Part shown: positions 1-48,548 of the stretch, one piece after another
Numbering within the stretch: the first letter of the stretch is position 1
Layout of the letters: every line of letters begins with the position of its first letter
DNA from: Phaeosaccion multiseriatum
Lineage: Eukaryota > Protista > Ochrophyta, other classes
Assembly: GCA_965112735.1 (NCBI GenBank)
Contig: OZ218957.1
Location: 1,798,001 to 1,862,000, forward strand
Reading direction: 5' to 3'
DNA: 64,000 nt
Made by a program: the position numbers and the translations under genes
The notes under the pieces: model-generated
What the model was told of the DNA's origin: nothing
What the model saw: only the letters and a program-made list of their open reading frames with translations
The model's database searches: none

Positions 1-1771
1 GATTGAAGTCCCTGCCAAAGTGGATCTTCTTGAGCGAGACAGGCAGGTCCAGAGGGAGGTTAAAGTCAGCCCCCATCCGCACCTCCTCCACACCGCAAGG
101 AAGGACCATGTGCTGATTGAAGCGAGAGTCCTCACAAAATCTGATCTTCTTGAGCGAGGCAGGCAGGTCCAGAGGGAAGTTAAAGTCAGCCCCCATCACC
201 ACCACCTCCTCCACACCGCAAGGAAGGACCACGCGCTGATTGAAGACCCTGCCAAAGTGGATCTTCTTGAGCGAGACAGGCAGGTCCAGAGGGAGGTTAA
301 AGTCAGCCCCCATCACCACCTCCTCCACGCCGCAAGGAAGGACCACGTGCTGATTGAAGTCCCTGCCAAAGTGGATCTTCTTGAGCGAGGCAGGCAGGTC
401 CAGAGGGAGGTTAAAGTAATGCCCCATCACCACCTCCTCCACGCCGCAAGGAAGGACCACGTGCTGATTGAAGAACCGGCTAAAGTAGATCTTCTTGAGC
501 GAGGCAGGCAGGTCCAGAGGGAGGTTAAAGGAAACCCCCATCACCACCTCCTCCACGCCGCAAGGAAGGACCACGTGCTGATTGAAGTGATGACCAAAAT
601 CGATATACTTGAGCGAGGCAGGCAGGTCCAGAGGGAGGTTAAAGAACCATCCCATGGCCACCTCCTCCACGCCGCAAGGAAGCACCACGTGCTGATTGAA
701 CTTCTGGCCAAAGTGGATAAACTTGAGCGAGGCAGGCAGGTCCAGAGGGAGGTTAAAGTTATCCCCCATCACCATCTCCTCCACGCCGCAAGGAAGGACC
801 ACGTGCTGATTGAAGCTCTGGGCAAAGATGATCTTCTTGAGCGAGGCAGGCAGGTCCAGAGGGAGGTTGTAACCCCCCATCCGCACCTCCTCTACACCAC
901 CAGGAAGGACCACGTGCTGATTGAAGTGATACCCAAAGCGTATCTTCTTGATCGAGGCAGGGAGGTCCAGAGGGAGGTTAAAGTCCCACCCCATCTCCAC
1001 CTCCTCTACACCACAAGGAAGGACCACGTGCTGATTGAAGTCCCTGCCAAAGTTGATCTTCTTCAACGAGGCAGGAAGCAAGATCCTCCCATTGAAAGCG
1101 CCTCCAAAGGACACTTCTTCCAATGTGTTGGGCAGAGATACATCGGCCTCATCGAAATAGTCGGAGAAGACCACACGCTTGACTGATGCGGGCAACTGCG
1201 CCAGCGCCTTCGCAACGAGAGCCTTGTCTGCAGATTTCATGCCTTCGTCTCGCGAATCATGGGCGTGACTGAACGCGGCGGCTAAGACAGCCTTGTCTGC
1301 AGGTTTCATGCCTTCGCATCGCGGGTGTCCGTCTCCGTATCTGAAGCCAAGCCGCACAGCCGCCACACGAAATGACCCTGGTACAGATTCACCGCGCTGT
1401 TCTTTCACCTGCTCTTCCTGATTAGCACGCATACCCCCAGACCTTCGGCCCCCCTCCAGGACCGATCTTGTCGCCTCACTCGCAGCAGTAGCACCTGCTC
1501 CCTCGGGAAAGGAAGATGCTGCAGAACAACACCTCTTCTCTTCAGCCTTCTGTTGCCGGAGCAAACTCAGGAAACGACGCTGCACACACTCAGGCATGGC
1601 GCCGCTGATCACCAGAGTGCGGGAGGTGCCCTCGTCAACCTCCCTACACACTCCCCACAGAGCTGTGTCCGAAGTGAAGCTGGCCACAGTTCTCAGGGCC
1701 GCTCTCGCCGCGCTATGCTCAGGCAGTGCCCCACGAGACTGCCCATCCTCACTCACGCCTCCCTTATCCAT
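1..1771 (-). CDS. FNIP-repeat (LRR-like) protein, paralog A, possible degenerate N-terminal F-box; 3' end beyond window start
   Basis: ATG at 1771 (MDKGGVSEDGQSRG...), open to position 1 by manual translation. Repeats LPASLKKIxFGxxFNQHVV / LPCGVEEVxMGxxFNLPLD from ~1195 to 1. N-terminus nearly identical to 15212..16903. Not in the ORF track because no stop lies inside the window. Confidence 0.9.
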   Translation of the reverse strand, partial: MDKGGVSEDGQSRGALPEHSAARAALRTVASFTSDTALWGVCREVDEGTSRTLVISGAMPECVQRRFLSLLRQQKAEEKRCCSAASSFPEGAGATAASEATRSVLEGGRRSGGMRANQEEQVKEQRGESVPGSFRVAAVRLGFRYGDGHPRCEGMKPADKAVLAAAFSHAHDSRDEGMKSADKALVAKALAQLPASVKRVVFSDYFDEADVSLPNTLEEVSFGGAFNGRILLPASLKKINFGRDFNQHVVLPCGVEEVEMGWDFNLPLDLPASIKKIRFGYHFNQHVVLPGGVEEVRMGGYNLPLDLPASLKKIIFAQSFNQHVVLPCGVEEMVMGDNFNLPLDLPASLKFIHFGQKFNQHVVLPCGVEEVAMGWFFNLPLDLPASLKYIDFGHHFNQHVVLPCGVEEVVMGVSFNLPLDLPASLKKIYFSRFFNQHVVLPCGVEEVVMGHYFNLPLDLPASLKKIHFGRDFNQHVVLPCGVEEVVMGADFNLPLDLPVSLKKIHFGRVFNQRVVLPCGVEEVVVMGADFNFPLDLPASLKKIRFCEDSRFNQHMVLPCGVEEVRMGADFNLPLDLPVSLKKIHFGRDFN

Positions 1772-2231
1772 GCTTCCCTCTGTTTCTCTTTCTTAACGTG
1801 TGTGTGTGGGCGCTACTACTGCGGTCAGTGGTAAGAGAAGAGAGGAAGGGTTTGAAAACCCCGGTTCAGAGCTACAAGCTGGTCCCACCAAGAGACCGAA
1901 AAATCTTCAGACGCGTCGACAGAAGAATCACATGGAGGGAAAAACTAGGGCTATGCTTTCGTTCGTCTTGACGCCCTCTATCGATTGACGCTGTGCCCTT
2001 CTCACAAGTCTGTTGTCATCGCGCTCTAAATCAGCGCCAGTTTTCCTCGATTTTCCCGAAATCTCCGTTTTTTTCGAACTTATACCCCCCAATCACAATG
2101 GGAAACGGCGTGGTCATACAGTACTCCTCAGCATGAGGCCAAGAGAGAAAACCGCCTGAAAATCGACTCGAATCCCGCATCGGAATCACGAGATGAAAAA
2201 AATTTCCCTCTTTTCGTGGGACCAGCTTGTA

Positions 2232-2962
2232 ACCGGCCAGGGGGAAGACTTTATTGACTTAATAACTGGTTTTTCGAGCAGAGCGAGTTTACGAGTCGAT
2301 AGGTCGAAAAACGTATTTTCAAGCAGCGGAGGATAGACAGATGGAAAGGAGTAAAGGGACGTGTAGAAGGCAGGGCATGCGCACGCCGGCTGGCGCAACG
2401 GCCCAACGGCCCTACGTAGCACACGCACGAGGCCCACCGACGGGGGTTACAAGGAGTCAGGAATTAGCAGGAATTAGCAATCACTACTGTAAAAGAGGAG
2501 GCGACGCGAGTACGGCGTCGCAAGAGTCGCAGCAAGTGTCGAAGAGCTCAGCGCGGTGAGAAGGACAGCGAAGGGAGCAGCCCAGCAGTCCACCGCACGG
2601 AAGGAGACGGCAGCGACAGCAAAAGTTTCCCCACCCGCCCGGCCCGGGGGGACGAGTGGGATTATCGGGAATCCAACGGGGTGGATGGGAGTAAGGGCGA
2701 GGCAGACGCGTCTGCCCGCCCTGCTTTGGCACCCCCTGGAAATCGCATGTACCCCCCTTTATACAAATAAACAAGCATTGAGTATTAGTTTGACTGAACG
2801 AGAGGGTGGTCGAGGTAAAGGCATATAGGTAGTATTAGGTGTCGGGACACAGCGGACTGAAAAGGAATCACCTAAGAAACTGAAAGTGTGAAAGTGTGTG
2901 TGACCGGCCAGGGGGAGACTTTATTGACTTAATAGGAATCACCTAAGAAACTGAAAGTGTGA

Positions 2963-2973
<11 letters not shown>
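2232..2973. repeat. Tandem copies of a ~65-bp element ACCGGCCAGGGGGAGACTTTATTGACTTAATAGGAATCACCTAAGAAACTGAAAGTGTG; the first copy is split by ~600 bp
   Basis: Left half 2232-2264, right half 2863-2902, intact copy 2903-~2970, variant copy 3364-3414, truncated copy 24622-24686 in the opposite orientation. Confidence 0.75.
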
Positions 2974-3010
<37 letters not shown>

Positions 3011-3363
3011 GTGTCGCTGTGTCTCCGGGGCCCTCGAGGGGCCGGTTACTCCCCCTCTAGGGCGGGGAGGGGGAGTGCGGGACCGGCTCCGCGGTTGAGC
3101 CGACCCAGGAAGGCGCGCTCCCGCTCCGAGAGCCACATCTGGTGGCTGCAGCTGACGAGGCGGCGAAGTCTTGTCAGGACGTGGCCCTTGGTGGTGGAGG
3201 AGCCAGTGCGGCCAGTGCGGGTGACCACGTGCTCGGCGAGTGCGTGCAGGAGCGATTGCGCCTGTGCGCCGAGTCGGCCGTGGGTCTCGATGGCGAAGGT
3301 GGAGAGGCGAGCACGCTCTCGGTCGTAGGTGCCCCTGTAGTGTCGCTCCTTGCGGGTCTCGCT
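2963..3363 (-). mobile_element. 5'-truncated CRE/R2-type non-LTR retrotransposon remnant: restriction-like endonuclease C-terminus, short 3' UTR and (CA)n tract
   Basis: Minus frame 3363->3046 reads SETRKERHYRGTYDRERARLSTFAIETHGRLGAQAQSLLHALAEH..., matching the RLE K-x-x-x-Y ... F-A-x-E-T-x-G-x-L-G signature. (CA)n follows at ~2963-3008. Confidence 0.7.
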
Positions 3364-3927
3364 ACCGGCCAGGGGAGGCTCCTTTCACTTTATTGACTTA
3401 GTAGGAATCACCTATAGGAAGGAAAGGAAGGAATTAGGGAGGCGAAGAGGCTCTTCTTCGCAAAGTAATGCTGCTGTGGTTCTGCCCTGCAACAGCTGTC
3501 GACCACCGCCGCACCCCCCTCTGCGGCCGATCACCCTCTGCTAACGTAAAACCCAACCCAGCCTCTGCTCCTCTGCTTCCCCTCTAACTATCCAAGTATG
3601 TAGGTCTTCATCGACTCGCCAGGCTACACCTCCTCCGAGCACCTCCAGCTGCTATCTCCCTCACCTTGGCTGGGCACCATCTGTCGGCAGGGGAGAGAGG
3701 GTCGGAGGGAGGCAAAAGAGGAGCAAGCAACCAAAGAAGAGGAGGGGGCGTGAGACAGGATATACAGAGCCCGGTACTGTATGCAATGCTCCCGATGTCC
3801 GAGCACTGAGCTGACTGCCCTCAACCGCACTACAACCATGCCTCGTGCGATTTGATCGTGATTTCCACGTGACGTGATCCTCATTTCATCTAATTTTATG
3901 CATCAAAAGTCATTTGATTGAGAGAGA

Positions 3928-13764: not shown

Positions 13765-15211
13765 GGAAGGAGGGAGAGGGAGGCAGGAGACTGACAGAAC
13801 GCTCTTCTCTCTCTCTCTCCCGATCTCCCGATCTCCCGACTTGTGACTGCTGCCACTGCTGCCGCGGGTGCCGTCTCTCCCTTCCCTCCCCTTCTCCTTG
13901 CTTGGGATGGTCCTTGATGGGCTCTGGGCATGTGGGGTAGACACACCTCATTGGCCCCCTTCATTCATTCACTCACTCACTCGCATGCTCGCCGTGGATG
14001 GTTGCAAAAACACCTTCGCTCTCAGTGAACAAGTGCTTCAAGCAGAGGAAGGGCAGTGGCGGCGGCAGCGGCAGCGGCAGCAGGAGCAGCAGCAGCAAGC
14101 GGCGGTAGGGCGTGCATGAGGGAGGCAAGGAAGGCATGGAGGGAGGGAGGGAGGGAGGGAGGGAGGGAGGCGTGGCGAGACCGTGCCAGATGGGACGGAG
14201 GGTTGTTGCAAGTCATCCCTAGAAGCAGTGATTTAATTGCGCTTTTGAGCGGCTGCCACGAGAGGGAGTGGGCGGGTACCACGTGCGGCGAGGAGTGTGC
14301 TGGCTCAGATGGCAGTCAAAGGCTCGGATGGCAGTCAAGGGCTTAGATGCAGTCAAGTGAGGATAAGTATGGGCCTCAGCCGCGCCATTCCACCAGAGCA
14401 GGGGGGGGGGATGCGACAGCGCATCGAAGCAGCCGAGGACTAGAGACGCAATCACAGCGCTGACTGTGCACACACACGCACATGCGCACGCGCACGCGCA
14501 TGCCCACAGCACAGCGGGAGCGTCCGCGTCAGCGTCAGCATGAGCATCAGCCAGTACTTGAGAAGCGACCATTTGAGTTTCGGCTTTCGAATGGTGCCCC
14601 GGCTGCTACCACTTTGGATAGCGGGGACTAATTTCGCTGGTCGGAGGGAGGAAAGGGCAGGGCAGGCAGGCAGCAGGAATGCAGGCAGCAGGAACGCAGG
14701 CAGGCAGGCAGCAAGGGAATCAGAAGGGAAGCTTACGGTTAGGACCAACTGCCCCTGCTGCGTGCAGATCTACCCCAGCAGCCTAGGGTGTGTCATCACG
14801 AGTAGCGATGATGTTTGTCGGCCGCTAAGGACGATTAGGGAGGTATGGCCTGGCGAGTCAGCAGCAGCGCAGCCTGTGCAGAGTAGGGCAACGGACAGGT
14901 GGAGGGTGGGGGTGCTGACCTACATACTTGGACAGTTAGAGGGCAAGCAGAGGAGCAGAGGCTGGGTTGGTTTTACGGTAGCAGGGTGATCGGCCGCAGA
15001 GGGGGGTGCGGCGGTGGTCGACAGCTGTTGCAGGGCAGAACCACAGCAGCATTACTTTGCGAAGAAGAGCCTCTTTGCCTCCCTTATGCGTGATCTACTC
15101 AAGCTCTGGCACCGTTGAGACGTTACTTTTAGACGACCATAGATGGCACTTAATGGTATATTTTGAGCCGTTCTTTTTGAAAAATAGCCCTCACAGTGTT
15201 AGTAAGAAAAC

Positions 15212-16903
15212 ATGGATATGGGAGGCTTGAGTGAGGATGGGCAGTCTCGTGGGGCACTGCCTGAGCACAGAGCGGCGAGAGCGGCCCTGAGAACTGTGGC
15301 CAGCTTCACCTCGGACACAGCTCTGTGGGGAGTGTGTAGGGAGGTTGACGAGGGCACCTCCCGCACTCTGGTGATCAGCGGCGCCATGCCTGAGTGTGTG
15401 CAGCGTCGCTTCCTGAGTTTGCTCCGGCAACAGAAGGCTGAAGAGAAGAGGTGTTGTTCTGCAGCATCTTCCTTTTCCGAGGGAGCAGGTGCTACTGCTG
15501 CGAGTGAGGCGACAAGATCGGTCCTGGAGGGGGGCCGAAGGTCTGGGGGTATGCGTGCGAAGCAGGAAGAGCAGGTGAAAGAACAGCGCGGTGAATCTGT
15601 ACCAAGGTCATTTCGTGTGGCGGCTGTGCGGCTTGGCTTCAGATACGGAATCTCGCGAGACGAAGGCATGAAATCTGCAGACAAGGCTCTCGTTGCGAAG
15701 GCGCTGGCGCAGTTGCCCGCATCAGTCAAGCGTGTGGTCTTCTCCGAATTTTTCGATGATGCCAATGTAACTCTGCCCAACACCGTGAAAGAAGTGTCCT
15801 TTGGACACGCTTTCAATGGGAGGATCTTGCTTCCTGCCTCGTTGAAGAAGATCAAGTTTGGCAGGGCTTTCAATCAGCACGTGGTCCTTCCTTGTGGTGT
15901 GGAGGAGGTGGTGGTGATGGGGGCTGACTTTAACCTCCCTCTGGTGCTGCCTGCTTCGCTCAAGAAGATACGCTTTGGCACAGAATTCAATCAGCACGTG
16001 GTCCTTCCTGGTGGTGTGGAGGAGGTGCGGGGTTACAACCTCCCTCTGGACCTGCCTGCCTCGCTCAAGAAGATCCACCTTGGCGAGTACTTCAATCAGC
16101 ACGTGGTCCTTCCTTGCGGTGTAGAGGAGGTGGTGATGGGATGGCACTTTAACGTCCCTCTGGACCTCCCTGCCTCGCTCAAGAAGATCCACTTTGGCCG
16201 GAACTTCAATCAGCACGTGGTCCTTCCTTGCGGCGTGGAGGAGGTGGTGATGGGGCTTGACTTTAACCTCCCTCTGGACCTGCCTGCCTCGCTCAAGAAG
16301 ATCAGATTTCATGAGTACTCTCGCTTCAATCAGCACGTGGTCCTTCCTTGCGGCGTGGAGGAGGTGGTGATGGGCGGTTACTTTAACCTCCCTCTGGACC
16401 TGCCTGCCTCGCTCAAGAAGATCCACTTTGGCAAGAAGTTCAATCAGCACGTGGTCCTTCCTTGCGGCGTGGAGGAGGTGGAAATGGGATGGTTCTTTAA
16501 CCTCCCACTGGACCTGCCTGCCTCGCTCAAGAAGATCGATTTTGGGCATCACTTCAATCAGCACGTGGTCCTTCCTTGCGGCGTGGAGGTGGTGGTGATG
16601 GGGGCTGACTTTAACTTCCCTCTGGACCTCCCTTCCTCGCTGAAGTGGATCAGATTTTGTGAGGACTCTCGCTTCAATCAGCACGTGGTCCTTCCTTGCG
16701 GCGTGGAGGAGGTGGTGATGGGGGCTGACTTTAACCTCCCTCTGGACCTCCCTGCTTCCCTGCGGATACTGGAACTGGGTCGACGTTACACATGTCCTTT
16801 GAGGACATTGCCTGCTGGCCTGCTAGAGCTTGTGGTTGGGAGGGACTGCCCGCTGCCTGCAGATCTACCCGAGGAGCTTGAGGTGTTTCATCACGTGGAA
16901 TGA
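15212..16903 (+). CDS. FNIP-repeat (LRR-like) protein, paralog B, 563 aa, intronless, possible degenerate F-box
   Basis: About 20 repeats of 19-21 aa (LPASLKKIxFGxxFNQHVV / LPCGVEEVVMGxxFNLPLD) at ~15713-16880. N-terminal LPEHR...VASF...ALWGVCREV resembles an F-box. Confidence 0.92.
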   Translation: MDMGGLSEDGQSRGALPEHRAARAALRTVASFTSDTALWGVCREVDEGTSRTLVISGAMPECVQRRFLSLLRQQKAEEKRCCSAASSFSEGAGATAASEATRSVLEGGRRSGGMRAKQEEQVKEQRGESVPRSFRVAAVRLGFRYGISRDEGMKSADKALVAKALAQLPASVKRVVFSEFFDDANVTLPNTVKEVSFGHAFNGRILLPASLKKIKFGRAFNQHVVLPCGVEEVVVMGADFNLPLVLPASLKKIRFGTEFNQHVVLPGGVEEVRGYNLPLDLPASLKKIHLGEYFNQHVVLPCGVEEVVMGWHFNVPLDLPASLKKIHFGRNFNQHVVLPCGVEEVVMGLDFNLPLDLPASLKKIRFHEYSRFNQHVVLPCGVEEVVMGGYFNLPLDLPASLKKIHFGKKFNQHVVLPCGVEEVEMGWFFNLPLDLPASLKKIDFGHHFNQHVVLPCGVEVVVMGADFNFPLDLPSSLKWIRFCEDSRFNQHVVLPCGVEEVVMGADFNLPLDLPASLRILELGRRYTCPLRTLPAGLLELVVGRDCPLPADLPEELEVFHHVE

Positions 16904-17436
16904 TGATGCAACTTCGTCACTGAGGAACAATTGGGGCGGTGGGAGGAAGAGCTCGATAGTGGAAGTAGAGGACGACCTCTCTCTCTCTCTCTGGTCGCGA
17001 AGTGGAGGGGAGCTTTGGGGATTGGGATTGGCCAAATCAGGCACTTGCGGCAGTGGTGCCTAGCGAAGTTGAGGGATGTAGTAGCAGTGTGAGCAAGAAG
17101 AGGGAGCAGGAGACGGAGATGGAGCAATGCGTTAAGGCCATCCCAAGATCAGCAGCTGGAGGGGGGGGAGAGAGACAGACAATATCGCTCACGAAGACGA
17201 GCACAAGGAATCTGGTTGAAACGTTTACGCATACACATACACATACACCCGCTAAACTGGCAACTGCTCGCCCCATACATGTGCATGCACGCACACACGC
17301 GCCCCTCCTTCACAATTGCTTCCTTGATACTTTAGTAGGAGCAAAACATCGCGACCGAACGAAGGCGTTGCAAAAGAGAAGAGAGGTTATCAAAGGCTCT
17401 GCTGCTCTCGCCCTGTCCACCCAAGCAGCGCCTGCG

Positions 17437-22301
<4,865 letters not shown>

Positions 22302-22641: not shown

Positions 22642-23355
22642 ATGTCGAATGTCCCTAAAGCAGAGCAGTGGAAGCAGCTATGCGAAGCCTGCATGAACCA
22701 ACAAACTGATGTCCTGCGGCGTCTTCTCGTCGTGGAGAAGTTCGACCCAAATGCCAGGGCTGAAGATCCGCTCTCCCCACCCGATGCCACCAACGAGGCA
22801 GCTGGAGACACAGCTGGTCACCAGGCAGCGAGGGACGGACAGGCGCTGTACATGCAGTGGATGCTGCAGGCGGGCCTCGAAGTGGATGGCGTGAACGCGC
22901 GAGGCGAGACCATGGCCCACCTCGCTGGCCGGTGCCGCAGCGCTTCGGGGCTCAAAGCCCTTCTCGACTTCCTCCCGGACTTTGAAAGGAGGACTTCTTG
23001 CGAGTACCCAAAAGGAGGAGGAGGAGGAGGAGGAGGAGGAGGAGGAGGAGGAGGAGGAGGAGGAGGAGGAGGAGAGAGAGAGGGGGGGGGAGGGTGGGGG
23101 GAGGGTTTGCTAAGAAGAAAGGGGGGCAGAAACGTCGAAGAGGAGGTCTTGGCCGGGACGGAAAGCGGCATCATGTGTAAAGGGGGAAGCGTTGAGGAAT
23201 GCCTATCCATCTTGCAGTGGTATCGAGACGTGGGGGTCCCCCAGGCCCGACGTAGGCATAAGGAAGCCGAAGCTGCGCGCATCGCGGCCGGAGAGCGCCT
23301 AAAGAGCGTGCTGTATGGACGCGATGTGGTGTGCGCGCCGTCGCCGGACATCTGA
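22642..23355 (+). CDS. Ankyrin-repeat protein, 237 aa, single exon
   Basis: GDTAGHQAARDG and DGVNARGETMAHLAGR ankyrin motifs; poly-G tract. Confidence 0.75.
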   Translation: MSNVPKAEQWKQLCEACMNQQTDVLRRLLVVEKFDPNARAEDPLSPPDATNEAAGDTAGHQAARDGQALYMQWMLQAGLEVDGVNARGETMAHLAGRCRSASGLKALLDFLPDFERRTSCEYPKGGGGGGGGGGGGGGGGGGGGEREGGGGWGEGLLRRKGGRNVEEEVLAGTESGIMCKGGSVEECLSILQWYRDVGVPQARRRHKEAEAARIAAGERLKSVLYGRDVVCAPSPDI

Positions 23356-40345: not shown

Positions 40346-43300
40346 ATGGTGCTTGCGTGCGAGAGGACGGGACAGCAGATGGGACAGCAGAATCAGCCAA
40401 ATTCATCTTGTGTGATGAGGGGCGGCACAGCGAGCAATAAGTACACAGCAGCAGCAGAGAGAGGAGGAGAGGAGGTTCACGAGGCGGCGGCGGTGGGCGA
40501 CATTAGGGCAGTGCTTTCCTTCCTGGAGAAGGGCGGGAGCGTGGATCAGAGAGTCCGTTTCGGCACCCGCAGCCTGCTTCATGAGGCGGTTTCCCACGAT
40601 CAAGCCGACGTGGTCAAGCTGCTCTTGGAGCGGGGCGCAGATGGTGAGTGCCGTAGACTCCCCCATATTGAGCTCTCACTGCTACTCAACGATACGCGCT
40701 TCTCGCCCAGTCTTTCTATCTACCCCCCTGCTTGCTTCTGAGCCTGATGCAAGGGCTCACAGAGGCTAAGGTACAGACAGTCCTGCTTGCTTCTGCGCCT
40801 GATGTAAGGGCTCACAGAGGCTAAGACACAGAGACTGTCCCTGCTCCACCTGCTCCTCCTCCTCGATCCTCCTCCCCCTCCCTGCAGCCAATCTCTTGGA
40901 AAAAGGCGCCACTACCCCGCTACACCTTGCCGCCAAGCACGGCCATGACCAAGTGCTGGCCCTCCTCCTGAGAAGTAGAACCCCGATCGGCGCTGGACAA
41001 GGCAGCAGCAGCAGCACCACCACCAACAACAACAACAGCAGCAGCAGTCATTTAGGCAGCACCAGCAGGACCCAGGGCGGTGTCATCCATGTGTGTGCTG
41101 CAGACGCCCTGCTTAATACTCCGCTACACTTTGCGGCATCTCCAGCGGCGGTGTCGATGCTCCTGGCCTGTGGAGCCGATCCTTCCCAGTGTAACGGCCA
41201 AGGCCTTACGCCAGAACACACGGCACAGGGGAGAGAGGCGAGGGGCGCCATTCGAGACCGTCTAGCGCGCCGGAAGGAGGAACAGGAACAAGTACAACGA
41301 CGACTGCGGGAGGAGGAGGAGGAGGAGGAGGAGGAGGAGGAGGGGGGGAGGGGGGATCTTGAGGAGGAAGAGGAGGACGGGCGACGGTACACCAGCAGTA
41401 GCAGTAGCAGTAGCAGCGACAGTAGCAGCAGCAGTAGCAGCAACAGCAACAGCAGCAGCAAGAACAGCAGCAGCAGCAGCAGCAGCAGCGGCGGCGACAG
41501 CAAACGCCGTGTCCCGGCCAGATCGAGGGGAGTAAGCACCGCCACCACCGTGCTGCACCACCATCACTACTACCACGACACCAGGCAGCAGCAGTTGCTC
41601 ATACAGCGGCAGAAGCAGCTGGTGATGCAGCAACAGGAGGATGAGCAGAAGCAGCAGGCCCAGCAGGAGCAACAGGCAGTAGATGATATGAAGGAGCAGT
41701 TGGGCGAAGGAAAAGTACGCACGGGCAAGAGCCACAGCCACAGCCAGAACGAGAAAACGATCACCCACCGCCACCCCTTAGGGGCAGGTCGAGGGCATGG
41801 GCACTCCTTCTCCTCCTCCGCCAGTGAGGTTGGAGGAGGAAGGGAGGGCAAGGGCCGAAGGGCTGGCGACTGCGCGGACGAGGAGGGTGTGGAAACGGAG
41901 GGGGAGGTAAGAAGGCAGGAGAAACACAAGGCAACGAGCAGGGGGGCGACACCAACACGTCAGCATCGTCATCGGCATCATCGGCACCGTAGGCTCTCGT
42001 CAGCGTTGGCCCTGACCCACGCCATGGACAGGGTGCGAGAGCAGGCCGAGAAACACCTCACTGCGTTGCGTAGGAAAGAAACGAAGCGGTTACAGAAGCC
42101 GTTACAGTCTGTGTTACACAAGAGTAAGAACGCGGAGGGGGAGGAGGAGGAGGAGGAGGAGGCGGAAGGGGCAGAGTCTATGTCTTCGGAAGAGTTGTCG
42201 TCGACAACGCATTCGGATGAGCTGCTGAGCAGGAGTACAAGCGAGGAGGAGGAAGGGGGGGGAGAGGAGGAGGAGAGGCGGCAAGTGCTGGGGCAGGACA
42301 AGCCGAGATGGCAGTGGATGGAGGAAGGAGCGGGCAAGAGAGTGGAGAGCACAAGGAAGGGGCCCGAGGAGCAACAGCAGCAGGAGGAGGAGGCGCCGCC
42401 TGTATCCGCCGAACCGCCTTCGGAGAGGAGGAGGCAAGCGAGAGGAAGAGGAAGTGGAGGAGGAGGAGGAGGAGGAGGAGGAGGAGGAGGAGGAGGAGGA
42501 GGAGGAGGAGCACGTGCGCTTGATGACAGCAACGTCGTGTTCTCCTCCAGGGGGAGGGTGGGCCTGGGCCGCTCCTCCCTCGTTCAGCAGCACGCCATCA
42601 AACGCACGGGATGGTGTGCGCAGAAGGAGCTACAGGAGCGGTGTGCCGGTCTGGAGGAGGAGCTGAGCGGTGTCAGAGGGGAGGCGGACAGGCTCCGAGC
42701 GGTGCTAAGAGAGGCCCTGCTGCAGCTAAGGGGGCTCAAGAAGCAGGAGGGGGGAGAGGGCACGACGAGCAGGAGGAGGAGGAGGAGAAGGAGAAGGCCT
42801 CCTGTGATGATGGAGGCGGAGGGGCAGCAGCAGCAGCAGGAGGAGGAGGAGGAGGAGGAGGAGGAGGAGGAGGAGGAGGAGGAGGAGGAGGAAGAGGAGG
42901 GGGAGGAGGGGAGGAGGAGTGGTGGACCTTCGTGTGGGTCTCCTTCGAGGGAGGAAGAGGCTGTGCGAGCTGCAGAGACAGCCGTAAGAGAGGAGGAAGA
43001 GAGGGTTGAGGAGGAGCAGGGAAAGGTCCGCGAGAGTCGACGCTGGGGAGTGCTGTTCGACCTTCAGGCGGCCTATCGGGAGGATACGCGACGGCTGAAG
43101 GGGGAGGTGGGTAGGCTGGTTGGGGAGGTAGGACGACTGACGAGGGAGAGGGAGAGGGAGAGGGAGGTGGCGGCTTTGAAGGCATTGGGTGGCAATGAGG
43201 GGAGTGTACATGTGCAGCAGCAGCAGCAGGAGGAGGAGGAGGGTCAGGAGGAGGAAGAGGAAGGGATGGTGCGGGGGGGGAGAGAGCAGGAGGGTGGGGC

Positions 43301-46300
43301 GACGAGGCAGAGAAGGAGAGGAGAGCAAACAATGCAGAGACGAGGAGGAGGACAAGGAAAAGGAGGAGGGGGAGGAGGAGGAGAGGACGATTGCAGCAGC
43401 AGTAGCAGCAGCAATGGCGGTGGTAGAGGTGTGGGACAAGAAGCGGGGGGAGCCTCGGGCCTACAGAGGGGGCTTATTGCTCAGCTGGAGGAGGACAACG
43501 CTGCGCTACGCAGGGCTTTTCTACTCCACACACCAGATGGCAGCAGATGCCACACGAGGGAGGCATTGGATGGCAGCACATGCCTCACGAGGGAGGCATT
43601 GGATGGCAGCAGATGCCACACGAGGGAGGCGTTGGATGGCAGCAGATGCCACACGAGGGAGGTGGTGGATGGCAGCAGATGCCACACGAGGAAGGCGTTG
43701 GATGGCAGCAGATGCCACACGAGGGAGACGGTGGATGGCAGCAGATGCCACACGAGGGAGGTGGTGGATGGCAGCAGATGCCACACGAGGGAGGCGTTGG
43801 ATGGCAGCAGATGCCACACGAGGGAGGCGGTGGATGGCAGCAGATGCCACACGAGGGAGGCGTTGGATGGCAGCACATGCCACACGAGGGAGACGGTGGA
43901 TGGCAGCAGATGCCACACGAGGGCGGCGTTGGATGGCAGCAGATGCCACACAAGGGAGGCGGTGGATGGCAGCAGATGCCACACGAGGGAGGCGTTGGAT
44001 GGCAGCAGATGCCACACGAGGGAGGCGGTGGATGGCAGCAGATGCCACACGAGGGAGGCGGTGGATGGCCGCAGATGCCACACGAGGGAGGCGGTGGATG
44101 GCAGCAGATGCCACACGAGGGAGGCGGTGGATGGCAGCACATGCCTCACGAGGGAGGCGTTGGATGGCAGCAGATGCCACACGAGGGAGGCGTTGGATGG
44201 CAGCAGATGCCACACGAGGGAGGCGTTGGATGGCAGCAGAGGGCGCACGGCCATGGGCGTTTTGGACGGCTTGGGGGGCAGAGGGCAGCGGGGCAGAAAT
44301 GGAGAGGGAAAGGATCCAATCGAGCAAGAGGAAGGAGGGGGGGTAGAGAAAGGGAGAGCAGAAGGTGTTCCGCGTTTCCGAGTTGAGGAAGATGGGAAGG
44401 AGGCTCCGCAGGGTGTGGGGGCCGAGGGGCAGCGGCAGGAGCAGGGGCAGGGGCAGCAAGAGGAGGATGCAGCCGGAGACGAGGAGGGGGAGGGGGAGGG
44501 GGCGGCCGGGAGTCTGTCACTGTCCGCAGCAGAGGACTTGTCCGCAGACGAACTGAGCAAGTTGGTTCTTCGTCGCCAGGAGATGTGTCTGATGCAACAG
44601 ATGTTGCTGAGACCGGAGCTGGCGGGGCTGCTGCTGAGAGGGACATCGGCAATCAGCACGGGCATCAAGCAGAAAGAGGAGGAGAAGGAGGAGAATGACG
44701 AGGAGAAGGAGGAGCGGAGGGGGGTCACAGAGCTGGTGGAGCTGCTGATGGCACTACGTCCTCTCTTGCACAACGAGAGGTGGCAGGCTCCAGAAGGGGG
44801 CGAGGAGGAGGAGGAGGGGAAGGAGTGGGAGGAGGAGGAGGAGGAGGAGGAGGAGGAGGAGGAGGAGGAGGAGGAGGAGGAGGAGGAGGAGGAGGAGCCG
44901 CAAGAGGAGAGAGTACTGCAGGCGGTGGGCCCAGATGGTGCGACTGTATCACCAGCTGCCACTGCTGCTGCTGCCGCTGCTGCTGCTACTCCTCGTGCTC
45001 CTGCTCCTTCTGTTGCTGCGGCTCCTTTTCCTCCCTCGTTTGGCCCTGAGGGGGACAGAAACCCCTACCCGTCTGTCCTCGTGGCGCATCAAGGCGATGA
45101 TGGCTTGGTGCAGAAGGAGAGGGAGAAGGTGGGGAATGGGGTAGGGGAGAAGCTTCACCTTGCGCACCACCACCCCCTCCACCTGGAGCAGCTTCAGCAG
45201 CGTCACCAGCAGCAGGAGGGTTTGGTCGTACAGCAGCAGCAGCAGCACTTGGTGACACATGAGCAGTTGGTGTCGTCTCCGTCTACTCTGGCATCGCTAG
45301 CGGCTTGCACCCCGCCCCCCGGGAGATGGCGGCCCTCAGCCCAGACGGGGTTGTCGCACTTGGGAGGGGAGCTGAGTCCGCTCAGTCTGGCAGGGAGCGT
45401 GGCCACAAGCACCGCAGGGGATGAGGAGGGGGAAGGAGGAGAAGGAGGAGGAGGAGGAGGAGGAGGAGGAGGAGGAGGAGGAGGAGGAGGAGGAGGAGGA
45501 GGAGGAGGATCCTGGGAGGAGGCAGGAGCTCTACATGGGACAGGGGCAGCAGAGGTGGGGCAAGCAGGGAACGGAGGCGCCGCTCCGAGTGGGAATGCGG
45601 GGTCGGTAGCAGCAGTGGGTGATACAGTAGAGCCAGAAGCAGCAGCAGCTGTCAGTGATACCGAAGATACGTCAACAGACCCAGCAACACCAGTTGGTGA
45701 TACGTCAGCACAGGAGTATCTTGCCCGAAGCTATGGCGAGACCCCAGGACCACCCGCACCATCACCACCAGGGACAGAGATGCCCTCACCGCCGTCACTT
45801 TTAGGGACGGCGAGTGCAAGGCCGCTGTCGGAGAGGCGCGGAGAGGAGAGAGGACGGGCAGCAGCGACAGTTGGTGATACAGCAGTCGGTGATGCCCCAG
45901 TTGGTAATACAGCAGTCGCGGTGGGGGCAGGGCGAGGCCCACCAATGCTCAAGGAGGACTCTTTGGAAGGGGTAGGGGCATTGCCTGGGTCAAGGGCAGG
46001 GGTGTTGCCTGGGTCAAGGGTGGAGGCATTGCCTGGGTCAAGGGTGGAGGCATTGCCTGAGTCAAGGGTGGAGGCATTGCCTGGGTCAAGGGTGGAGGCA
46101 TTGCCTGGGTCAAGGGTGGAAGCATTGCCTGGGTCAAGGGTGGAGGCATTGCCTGGGTCAAGGGTGGAGGCATTGCCTGGGTCAAGGGTGGAGGCATGGC
46201 CTGGGTCAAGGGTGGAGGCATTGCCTGGGTCAAGGATGGAGGCATTGCCTGGGTCAAGGGTGGAGGCATTGCCTGGGTCAAGGGTGGAGGCATTGCCTGG

Positions 46301-48548
46301 GTCAAGGGTGGAGGCATTGCCTGGGTCAAGGGTGGAGGCATTGCCTGAGTCAAGGGTGGAGGCATTGCCTGGGTCAAGGGTGGAGGCATTGCCTGGGTCA
46401 AGGGTGGAGGCATTGCCTGGGTCAAGGGCACGAGTATGGCAAGGGCCGTCAAGGGCTGCTGAAGGCCCTCGATTAGAGCCTGGACAGGGAGGAGGACGAG
46501 GAGCAGCAGAAGGTGAACAAGACGCTGTCGCTGTCGCCGCCGCCAGAGGAGAGAGGGAGAGGGAGAGACACCAAGGCCAAGAGGAACAAGCTCACGTGCT
46601 GTGGCACCCCCCTCGGGGTGCCGAGGCCGAGGGAGGACATCAGGGAGGAGAAAAGGAGGAGGGAGAGGAGGAGGAGGAGGAGGAGGAGGAGGAGGAGGAG
46701 GAGGAGGAGGAGGAGGAGGAGGACGAGGAGGACGAGGAGGAGGAGTCTCGGGGCTCGAGCGGGCTATATCACAAACTGCTGCACTCCCCTCTGAGTGCGG
46801 TGGGTCGCCTCGCGTCACGCACCCTTGCCAGTCTGCCCTCTCCCTCTTCCCATCACCGCATGTGGTCACTGCCGCTCCATGTCGATCTGGAAACCTCCGG
46901 CGATTCCTCTGGAGAAGGAGAAGGAGAAGGAGAAGGAGAAGGAGAGGGGAGGGCGGCTAAGGCTAGGAGGAGGCGGCGGCAGCGGCGTAGCAGCCGCTTG
47001 GGGGGCAGCAGCCCAATTCCGACTAGCAGTGGCACGGGGAGCGTCCGCCTGACCCGTGCGCAGCCGCCTGAGGAGTGCCGCGAGAGGGACGAGGGACAGA
47101 CCCCCCCCGACACCACGGGCAGCGCATCGAGCCTTGACCCAGGCAATAGTCGACAGGACCAGATGGTGATACAGGAGCAGCAGTTGGTGATACAGGAGGA
47201 GGTGTACGGCATGTTTCGGGACGGGGCGGCAGGACACGCATCATCACACAGCAGAGCCAATATAGGAGGAGATGACTCCGGCTCAGACAGGGGCAGCGGC
47301 GCCAGCAACAGTGACAGCAGCAGCAGTGACAGCAGCAAGGGGAGGAGGGGCAAAGGCAAGGACAAAGGCAAGGACAAGCGCAAGAGCAAGGGCAGCGACA
47401 GGAGCAGCAGGAGCGGGGCGATGAGGGGTGGGGGCCGGACAAGGGCCCAGGAGGACTCCGGGGGGGAGGTGAGAGCCGGGTCAGCGCCATTGCATACGTC
47501 AAGGCCAATCGTCGCCACAGAAGGAGAGAGTCCTGCGACAAGTAGAAGGGTTGGTAGCGGTCAGCAGCAGGGCATGCTTATCTCCGGGGAGAAGCGAAAT
47601 ACGGCACTATTGCATCACGGGGCAAGGGTGGCGGCGGCGTTATCATCGGACCGACCGGGGAGCGAGAAGGAGGGCGCCACGCCTCCTGCCTCAAACTCCT
47701 CCTCGTCCTGCCGTTCCCTCCCGCCATCATCACTTCCGACCGGCCCGAGCACAAGCGATGCGAGGCGGACATCTGTGATGAGTGATGAGGTGCGGAGCCA
47801 CTGGCCGAGGAGGAGGAGGAGGAAGAGGGTTTTCGAGTCGAGGAGGGGAGGGGGGAAGAGGCGAGAAGAGAGGAGGCAGGAGGAGGAGGAGGAGGAGGAG
47901 GAGGAGGAGGAGGAGGAGGAGGAACAGGAGGAGGAGGACGAGGGGGGGGGGGGGAGGGAGGAGAATACGACAACGGCCAACGCCCCGGATGACAGCAGTG
48001 AACGAGCAAGAGGAAGCAGGAGGAGCAGGCACCACCAGCAGGAGACCATAGACGAGGAGGAGGGAGGAGCAGCAGCAGCAGCAGCAGCAGGAGGAGGAGG
48101 AGGAGGAGGAGGAGCAGGGAAAGGCGGGCGAAGAGGAGGAGGGGGTGATGTCTTCAAGCGCCGTAGCAGCCAAGTGCTCCGTGACTTGGAGTCGCACCGA
48201 GCCGCCCTCGGATCAGCCTTCGGAGACGCCACCCAAAGGCGAAGAACCTCTCACCTCCCAACTCCCCTGGGCCAGCAGCAGGAGGAGGGCCAGCAGCAGG
48301 AGGAGGGCCAGCAGCAGGAGGAGACAACGACGAAGGCGACGACTAGTCCGGGGTGGAGGGCCTTCCTGTCGCCCAGGGAAGGGGCGAGGGTGGGGGGCGC
48401 TAGGCGTGCGTCTGACACGGTGCTGTTCACCTCTGCGGGGCGGCGCCTGAGAGAGAGAGGCGCCCCGTGGAGGGAGACGCTGCAAGGCTTGCTGCAAGAG
48501 TACCGCCCGGAGCCCGTCAAGCACCCATACTGGGACAACATGTACTGA
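40346..48548 (+). CDS. Very large protein with N-terminal ankyrin repeats, coiled-coil and low-complexity regions, and two internal tandem-repeat arrays (2 exons)
   Basis: Exon 1 40346-40643 ([33 protein letters not shown]). GT-AG intron to ~40887. Exon 2 continues [20 protein letters not shown]...NTPLHFA as a 7.6-kb open frame to the stop at 48548. Confidence 0.75.
43536..44240 (+). repeat. Exonic 33-bp minisatellite, about 21 copies ([11 protein letters not shown])
   Basis: GATGGCAGCAGATGCCACACGAGGGAGGCGTTG units. Confidence 0.95.
45976..46429 (+). repeat. Exonic 24-bp minisatellite, about 19 copies (LPGSRVEA)
   Basis: TTGCCTGGGTCAAGGGTGGAGGCA units. Confidence 0.95.

Follow-up and report, generated by a model that had tools for sequence, protein, structure and literature searches.

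How can a protein be built from repeats that are nearly alike in their DNA and that differ from one another at the same few codons, and has selection put those differences there or has the copying of repeats left them behind? The question is raised by a 64,000-nucleotide stretch of the alga Phaeosaccion multiseriatum (assembly GCA_965112735.1, contig OZ218957.1, positions 1,798,001 to 1,862,000 of the forward strand; hereafter the window), which carries two genes for FNIP, or FGxxFN, leucine-rich repeat (LRR) proteins. We refer to the open reading frame (ORF) at 15212-16903 on the plus strand as gene B and to its inverted paralogue at 1..1771 on the minus strand as gene A; all coordinates are window positions. 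A and B are young inverted paralogues, about 4% diverged. In the explanation that we favour, and that we hold to be probable, they are young paralogues of FGxxFN LRR proteins in which the repeat framework has been conserved and LRR positions 5, 8 and 9 have diversified as a binding stripe. Giant viruses, Dictyostelium and brown algae count FGxxFN LRR proteins among their largest repeat families, and we know of none of these proteins with a known ligand.

With the Pfam family FNIP (PF05725), gene B scores 163.7 bits (E 9.8e-49, in 12 stretches), where the cut-off is 21. The units are of two types, LPASLKKIxFGxxFNQHVV (type 1) and LPCGVEEVxMGxxFNLPLD (type 2), which alternate to form a double unit of 114 nucleotides (nt). 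The class hallmark, a tandem LxxLxFGxxFN(Q) motif with an LP sub-motif, is present: type 1 has SLKKIxFGxxFNQ and then LP, and type 2 has MGxxFN instead. Most units are 19 amino acids (aa) long, and a few have 16, 18, 20 or 21 aa. Apart from these few, the alternating 19-aa units and 114-bp double unit described in an earlier reading made from the DNA alone (the sequence-only reading) were reproduced, and its lists of the paired residues in both paralogues were recovered exactly.

Three codons vary in each unit: one at the x of KI-x-F (unit position 9) and two at the xx of G-xx-FN (unit positions 12 and 13). In canonical 19-aa units, entropy per codon or residue is 1.35-3.0 bits at these positions and 0-0.8 bits elsewhere, and the value at position 9 bears out the third variable site that had been proposed at KI-x-F. 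The xx slots take 25 distinct states among 35 units, with 30% aromatic or His residues and 39% charged ones. A 23-mer of the surrounding framework is found 17 times, where chance would give 0. As far as their sequence tells, both arrays resemble sets of copies of one 114-nt unit that have diversified.

The finding that carries our explanation is an excess of replacement change at the three variable codons. Measured against the unit consensus, the framework has a nonsynonymous divergence (pN) of 0.017 and a synonymous divergence (pS) of 0.079 (24 synonymous changes), which gives a ratio (omega) of 0.22; pN at the variable codons is 0.39, five times the framework pS (Fisher p 2e-17). A second test compared positional counterparts in the two genes, units A1-6 with B1-6 and A17-19 with B15-17, a pairing backed by common silent markers or oddities. 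Here the variable codons had a pN of 0.288, and the pooled silent sites used as reference had a pS of 0.065 (ratio 4.4, p 2e-6); the framework had a pS of 0.106 and an omega of 0.33. Purifying selection thus acts on the framework, and the enrichment of nonsynonymous change that the sequence-only reading had expected at the variable codons is present by both measures.

The same reading had described the framework as almost invariant even at synonymous sites, and this was not the case, given a framework pS of 0.079 to the consensus and 0.106 between counterparts. A yardstick for these values comes from the N-terminal parts of the two genes, where 487 nt of DNA are 95.5% identical and 207 codons give a dN/dS (the same ratio) of 0.94 (17 replacement and 6 silent changes) with a dS of 0.040. 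Framework pS is not below this dS, and so nothing suggests constraint on the DNA itself. The likeness of the framework from unit to unit is what young or recently copied repeats show.

Change at the variable codons tends to be all-or-none. Between counterparts, the 29 variable codons comprise 18 without a difference, 3 with one changed base, 6 with two and 2 with three, where a binomial expectation would be 12.7, 12.1, 3.8 and 0.4, respectively (p 0.0013). Each of the 11 changed codons encodes another residue, and in 8 the change involves two or more bases. The two codons of G-xx-FN had been said to be replaced wholesale, which describes these changed counterparts well and does not describe the units at large, since only one or two base changes separate most variant codons from the consensus AGG GAC (RD, type 1) or GCT GAC (AD, type 2).

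An AlphaFold2 model of gene B, built from a 50-sequence alignment, indicates where these residues may lie. The predicted local distance difference test score (pLDDT) exceeds 95 throughout the repeats and falls below 50 over most of residues 1-150, and the model has a short strand at positions 7-10 of every unit. In a phmmer search against the PDB, the repeats matched two proteins of Cafeteria roenbergensis virus, CroV588 (E 1e-46) and CroV539 (E 5e-15), in register, and the best fold matches returned by Foldseek were CroV588 (6nyr, E 3e-22, template modelling score 0.50-0.59), YopM and CroV539, with 7zal at E 5e-8. The repeats of gene B are predicted to fold as an LRR solenoid like the solved CroV proteins, so that the FNIP solenoid of the sequence-only reading is upheld by the Pfam match, the model confidence and the fold match to CroV588 alike.

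In the register of the CroV588 alignment, unit positions 9, 12 and 13 correspond to LRR positions 5, 8 and 9. With the strand at positions 7-10, position 9 would lie in the middle of the strand, flanked by the core residues I/V-8 and F/M-10, and would thus point out of the concave sheet; positions 12-13 come, in the model, after the Gly at the strand end. The KK of type 1 units and the EE of type 2 units, both invariant, probably also lie on the concave face, where they would form an alternating charge ladder and leave a narrow stripe alone free to vary. That the variable residues gather on one face, as had been anticipated, is supported as far as the strand register of the model and the register of the CroV588 crystal structure reach. 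No signal peptide or membrane segment is visible by eye in the sequence.

We suggest that genes A and B encode soluble FGxxFN-type (FNIP) LRR proteins in which each 19-aa unit would supply one short beta-strand to a concave sheet. The solenoid would be built by the framework (LP, aliphatic residues, F/M-G and FN), and LRR positions 5, 8 and 9 alone would be free, forming a continuous stripe along the concave face and the rim. This stripe would be the likely protein-binding surface, and we infer that it binds a protein ligand. Whole units and short patches may be duplicated, lost and copied, which would keep the DNA framework alike and move cassettes, and new residues at the three exposed positions would be favored by selection. 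Selection, and not copying bias, presumably drives the excess at these positions, and both genes are presumably expressed. The diversifying family of binding proteins that the sequence-only reading proposed is a fair description, as the exposed positions outpace neutral sites and further genomic copies carry other variable codons.

What the proteins do is a more tentative matter. Host-virus or host-parasite conflict is a possible role that we would put below an even chance, and service as substrate adaptor of a ubiquitin ligase or something similar is possible too, if slightly less likely; other protein-protein scaffolding takes up the rest. FNIP is the sole Pfam match of gene B above the curated cut-off, with no NB-ARC or NACHT domain of the kind that marks NLR/STAND immune receptors, no TIR or signalling domain and no detected F-box, and the immune or antiviral role suggested earlier is thus unsupported.

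Several points weigh against the explanation we favor. The N-terminal dN/dS of 0.94 fits weak constraint or disorder, and also the decay of one copy. Inside the variable codons themselves pN is close to pS (0.39 and 0.36 to the consensus, 0.29 and 0.12 between counterparts, all from small and path-dependent counts), so the case for selection rests on the silent sites of the framework and of the N-terminus. Part of the excess would arise without selection if the framework is homogenized by short-tract copying that stalls when it meets mismatched variable codons. The positional orthology of the units was deduced from the silent markers they have in common, and the variable residues are placed on one face by way of the model's strand register and the register-matched crystal structure of CroV588. 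Finally, the sequencing runs we found show even depth over intergenic DNA, which identifies them as DNA runs, and they give no RNA support for expression.

How units move can be read from the arrays directly. A WF / D-HH cassette occupies A9-10 and B13-14 with the same codons (95% identical each), an AD(F) / R-CEDSR / AD block lies near the 3´ ends of both arrays, and B10 (HEYSR) is 94% identical to A18 (CEDSR). The arrays also have unequal numbers of units. Cassettes at shifted ordinal positions and a differing unit number are, to judge by these alignments, ordinary unequal exchange in tandem repeats. On a smaller scale, the third base of Gly-11 is associated with what follows it: GGA is used in 3 of the 4 units with Trp, just before TGG, and in none of 9 others (p about 0.014, calculated by hand), and GGG precedes CAT CAC and TAT CAC. 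Because this silent base travels with the next codons, the variable patches appear to be inherited or copied as blocks and not to arise by separate point mutations.

Further units exist outside the window. Public DNA runs of this organism yield contigs whose depth across the repeats is 40-400 times that of single-copy DNA, a summed depth that is not a copy number, and in these contigs the same framework is joined to codons absent from A and B (KIKFGKL, KITFGWS, IKFGNL). The sub-family therefore has further members elsewhere in the genome. One of the runs, X1, differs from the window by about 1% upstream, and its contigs are fragmented over the repeats. Separately, the stretch 14946-15333, which comprises DNA upstream of B and the first 120 nt of the gene, has a summed contig depth of about 40-80 times single-copy in runs X2-X4 and not in X1; it may reflect a repeat family, a simple-sequence artefact or a true difference between samples.

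These observations bear on the alternative that survives best, in which templated exchange of patches is the main generator of variation. Either the third base of Gly-11 with codons 12-13, or codon 9, would be copied among genomic units, point mutation would be minor, and the outcome would be a germline combinatorial repertoire. We regard this as unlikely. Multi-base, all-or-none change (p 0.0013) is what such copying would leave, as is the linkage of Gly-11 silent states to the following codons; many further copies are present in the genome; and candidate donors can be named within A and B, with the CGG of A19 as in A5 and B5 and the GGG TAT CAC of A4 one base from the GGG CAT CAC of B14. However, no donor was found among the A and B units for TE, QS or EY, descent of whole units explains the Gly-11 linkage equally, and repeated selection on one codon also yields multi-base change.

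A wider form of the same idea, to which we give somewhat less credence, is a germline cassette pool. The genome's many FNIP units with a common framework would make up the pool, and two or three variable codons, with the adjacent silent Gly base, would pass between units and between genes in short templated patches. If this were true, binding stripes would be re-assorted much faster than point mutation allows, and the system would be a germline analogue of the variable lymphocyte receptors (VLRs) or of chicken immunoglobulin gene conversion, in a stramenopile alga.

Neutral hypervariability, which we consider improbable, would dispense with selection at the three positions. They would be unconstrained, and gene conversion or unequal crossing-over would erase silent differences in the framework and stall at mismatched variable codons, which would then look older and more divergent than their surroundings. 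Units clearly move and duplicate, and the similarity of pN and pS inside the variable codons (0.39 and 0.36) is in keeping with this account. Yet a framework pS of 0.079-0.106, not below the N-terminal dS of 0.040, gives no sign of recent erasure, none of the 11 changed counterpart codons is purely silent, and the framework between variable sites extends for 6-42 nt, which would be short for recombination tracts.

A little less probable again is that one or both copies are young pseudogenes, decaying or unexpressed, with frames kept open by chance and by the repeat structure. The N-terminal dN/dS of 0.94 and the want of RNA support would fit, as would the relic of a gene 3´ end upstream of B and the unrelated DNA that begins 4 nt upstream of the ATG (1.66 kb in A, 123 nt in B). 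But the reading frames run unbroken for 563 aa and for at least 590 aa, although the arrays have many insertions and deletions of unit length, all of them in frame; the framework omega of 0.22-0.33 indicates purifying selection; and the N-terminal head motif described below is kept in homologues whose repeats have an identity of only about 30%.

Programmed or somatic diversification of the VLR or diversity-generating retroelement type, or a code in the manner of transcription activator-like effectors (TALEs) with one repeat for one target, has only the formal resemblance of near-identical repeats with two hypervariable residues each to recommend it and is very improbable, although the sequence-only reading had proposed both likenesses: B is intact as a germline ORF and A stays open in all of its sequence within the window, contigs from the assembly's own sample have no variants in the unique flanks and no somatic variants were seen, no reverse transcriptase or template repeat was identified nearby in a partial look (two tblastn queries and Pfam on the larger ORFs of the window), the window holds no flanking LRR cassettes, its sole flanking fragment being an 84-nt relic, Pfam scans of large ORFs found no deaminase, and the repeats have a predicted LRR beta/loop fold in place of the TALE helical repeat, with 25 states among 35 units, too many for a small reused alphabet, and no sign that one repeat serves one ligand unit.

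Pfam searches of the whole gene B protein and of residues 1-167, at E up to 1, gave no F-box, F-box-like or other N-terminal domain, a divergent F-box being possible. A word-indexed search with residues 1-170 returned no relatives of the N-terminus, and all 5323 matches of an exhaustive protein search begin at about residue 160, with none in the N-terminus. A head motif of the approximate form ELWxLSRSxDLLAxRG, followed by hydrophobic residues, was spotted by eye in a subset of distant homologues and then tested. A hidden Markov model (HMM) constructed from 6 homologues and excluding A and B matched B residues 36-69 at 17.7 bits (E 2.6e-4), where the best of 2000 shuffles scored 9.2 bits, and it recovered 3 more homologues, for at least nine in all (P0015, P0020, P0028, P0037, P0049, P0069, P0073, P0115 and P0147). 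The motif is also found at the same residues of gene A, and a search from the head of P0049 added two further proteins.

In the homologues the head joins the first repeat directly, whereas A and B insert a low-complexity spacer of about 60 aa, to which A adds a further 25-aa duplication. The corresponding 75-nt extra segment of gene A resembles a tandem duplication of the segment that follows it (CEGMKPADKAVLAAA adjoining DEGMKSADKALVAKA). Pfam matched no family in the heads of seven homologues, an F-box is detectable in 2 of 48 close homologues, and a protein-language-model search with the N-terminus pointed to viral clusters named 'F-box and FNIP' (scores 0.83-0.85), which we take as a lead only. 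For these reasons we leave the head unnamed. It may couple the repeat array to a partner.

The start codons of A and B are 13.4 kb apart, and the genes are inverted relative to each other; the parts of both genes and the related DNA around them are collected in Table 1. Homology between the two copies breaks 4 nt upstream of the ATG, giving way to 1.66 kb of unrelated DNA in A (1776-3435) and 123 nt in B (15085-15207), and similarity picks up again further upstream. A transposon in the upstream DNA of A was considered and rejected, as only microsatellites match that DNA within the window. From its sequence, the relic upstream of B suggests that another FNIP gene once lay there. No third FNIP gene is present in the window besides A and B, and a look-up found no record of the exact sequence of gene B among public assemblies.

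Table 1. Coordinates (window positions) of genes A and B, their parts and related DNA.
Feature	Position	Strand	Remarks
Gene B	15212..16903	+	Complete intronless ORF, 563 aa + stop; FNIP/FGxxFN LRR protein
Gene B, N-terminal head motif (residues 36-69)	15317..15418	+	Match to leave-out HMM; no Pfam family
Gene B, Ala/Glu/Gly/Ser-rich spacer (residues ~72-130)	15425..15601	+	Predicted disordered, pLDDT <50; falls within the head region when compared with homologues
Gene B, units 0-1, degenerate N-terminal cap repeats	15713..15829	+
Gene B, units 2-17, type 1/type 2 19-aa repeats	15830..16747	+	Variable codons at unit positions 9, 12, 13
Gene B, units 18-19, divergent C-terminal cap	16748..16900	+
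Gene A	1..1771	-	At least 590 aa, stop-free; 3´ end past the window start
Gene A, parts	repeats 1-1078; cap units 1079-1195; N-terminal part 1196-1771	-
Gene A, in-frame 75-nt (25-aa) extra segment in spacer	1262..1336	-	Only in A; from A/B alignment
Upstream segment common to A and B	14917..15084 (+) vs 3433-3606 (-)		95-96% identity, ~170 nt
84-nt relic like the 3´ end of an FNIP gene	14730..14813	+	77% identity to 16827-16908 (last codons of B and stop region)

The window as a whole is GC-rich (about 58%), eukaryotic and laden with microsatellites, and its GC content is even throughout. An integrated giant virus or virophage was rejected as the setting of the two genes: no viral island was found, the neighbors are a kinase, ankyrin repeats, Fea1 and LMF1, and the GC content does not shift. 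Two ORF pieces on the minus strand, 17437-18000 and 19881-20501, match lipase maturation factor (LMF1, LMF1_C) and look like exons of a single spliced gene, which runs towards B and comes within about 530 nt of its 3´ end. Downstream of B, ankyrin-repeat ORFs lie at 22642-23355 (+) and 40896-48548 (+) and do not adjoin the FNIP genes. Antisense ORFs run through both arrays, at 15722-16684 (-, 320 aa) and 20-1186 (+, 388 aa), and most likely result from a repeat unit that happens to be stop-free in that frame.

The variable stripe of the FGxxFN class and its analogy with VLRs are already in print, and the sequence-only reading overstated the novelty of the pattern. According to PMC9525666, the FGxxFN proteins of CroV, mavirus and Dictyostelium vary most at the two residues that separate FG from FN, position 5 is the sole variable residue of the concave face, and the concave surface probably does the binding; the paper also makes the comparison with VLRs. 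Variation at positions 5 and 8-9 is thus given there. The hypervariable genes of Cafeteria virophages are likewise FNIP genes.

The closest known systems are CroV588 and CroV539 (6nyr and 7zal; PMC9525666). A and B resemble them in the LxxLxFGxxFNQ...LP motif, in the predicted solenoid fold, in variability at position 5 on the concave face and positions 8-9 on the rim, and in the near-identity of repeats within one protein. They differ in that their units have 19 aa, against 22 in CroV588, and do without three residues of the convex loop; in the strict alternation of two unit types, with the first Phe of the 'double Phe spine' replaced by Met in every second unit; and in the concave face, which carries alternating KK and EE in place of the His/Tyr ladder of the CroV proteins. 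A and B are also cellular, from an alga, and have an additional N-terminal head and spacer, whereas CroV588 and CroV539 are viral.

Unlike the class at large, with repeats of about 21-22 residues, A and B have 19-aa units. Since 19 aa is the commonest spacing in 56 of 155 homologues, this length marks a sub-class and does not exclude them from the FNIP class. Neither the 19-aa unit nor the alternation of two types is unique to A and B. Homologues with 19-aa units are present in public assemblies (for example P0013 and P0014), and P0013 also alternates two unit types; nine homologues have the head. Their identity to A and B is at most about 40%, and none has the spacer.

Among stramenopile algae, large FNIP families are a feature that A and B have in common with the brown algal expansions, of about 104 proteins in Ectocarpus (PMC9525666) and 121 in Saccharina japonica (PMC4421812), and their homologues include proteins of Ectocarpus fasciculatus. 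In the portions of these two papers used here, brown algae are treated through counts and a link to giant viruses, without a repeat-level analysis of substitutions. The F-box/FNIP proteins of Megavirus and the FNIP-type Skp1 interactors of Dictyostelium (PMC9525666, PMC9485057) have an FNIP array after a short N-terminal module, as in A and B; Pfam detected no F-box here, even at E up to 1. Lamprey VLRs, TALE repeats and the exon-shuffled LRR-ROCO and NB-ARC-TPR candidates of Ectocarpus (PMC3341825) offer a broader likeness, a few fast ligand-facing residues on a fixed modular scaffold. A and B are intronless, show no sign of somatic assembly and have no DNA-reading helical fold, signalling domain or arrangement of one exon per repeat.

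Set beside these systems, the locus leaves existing knowledge of the FGxxFN class unchanged. What it adds is a measurement of the replacement excess at the level of DNA, the all-or-none replacement of codons and a conserved head motif. As a clean young pair of paralogues, A and B allow the excess at LRR positions 5, 8 and 9 to be measured against silent sites and the copying of units and patches to be seen directly, and the pair could serve as a model for what FGxxFN LRR proteins bind.

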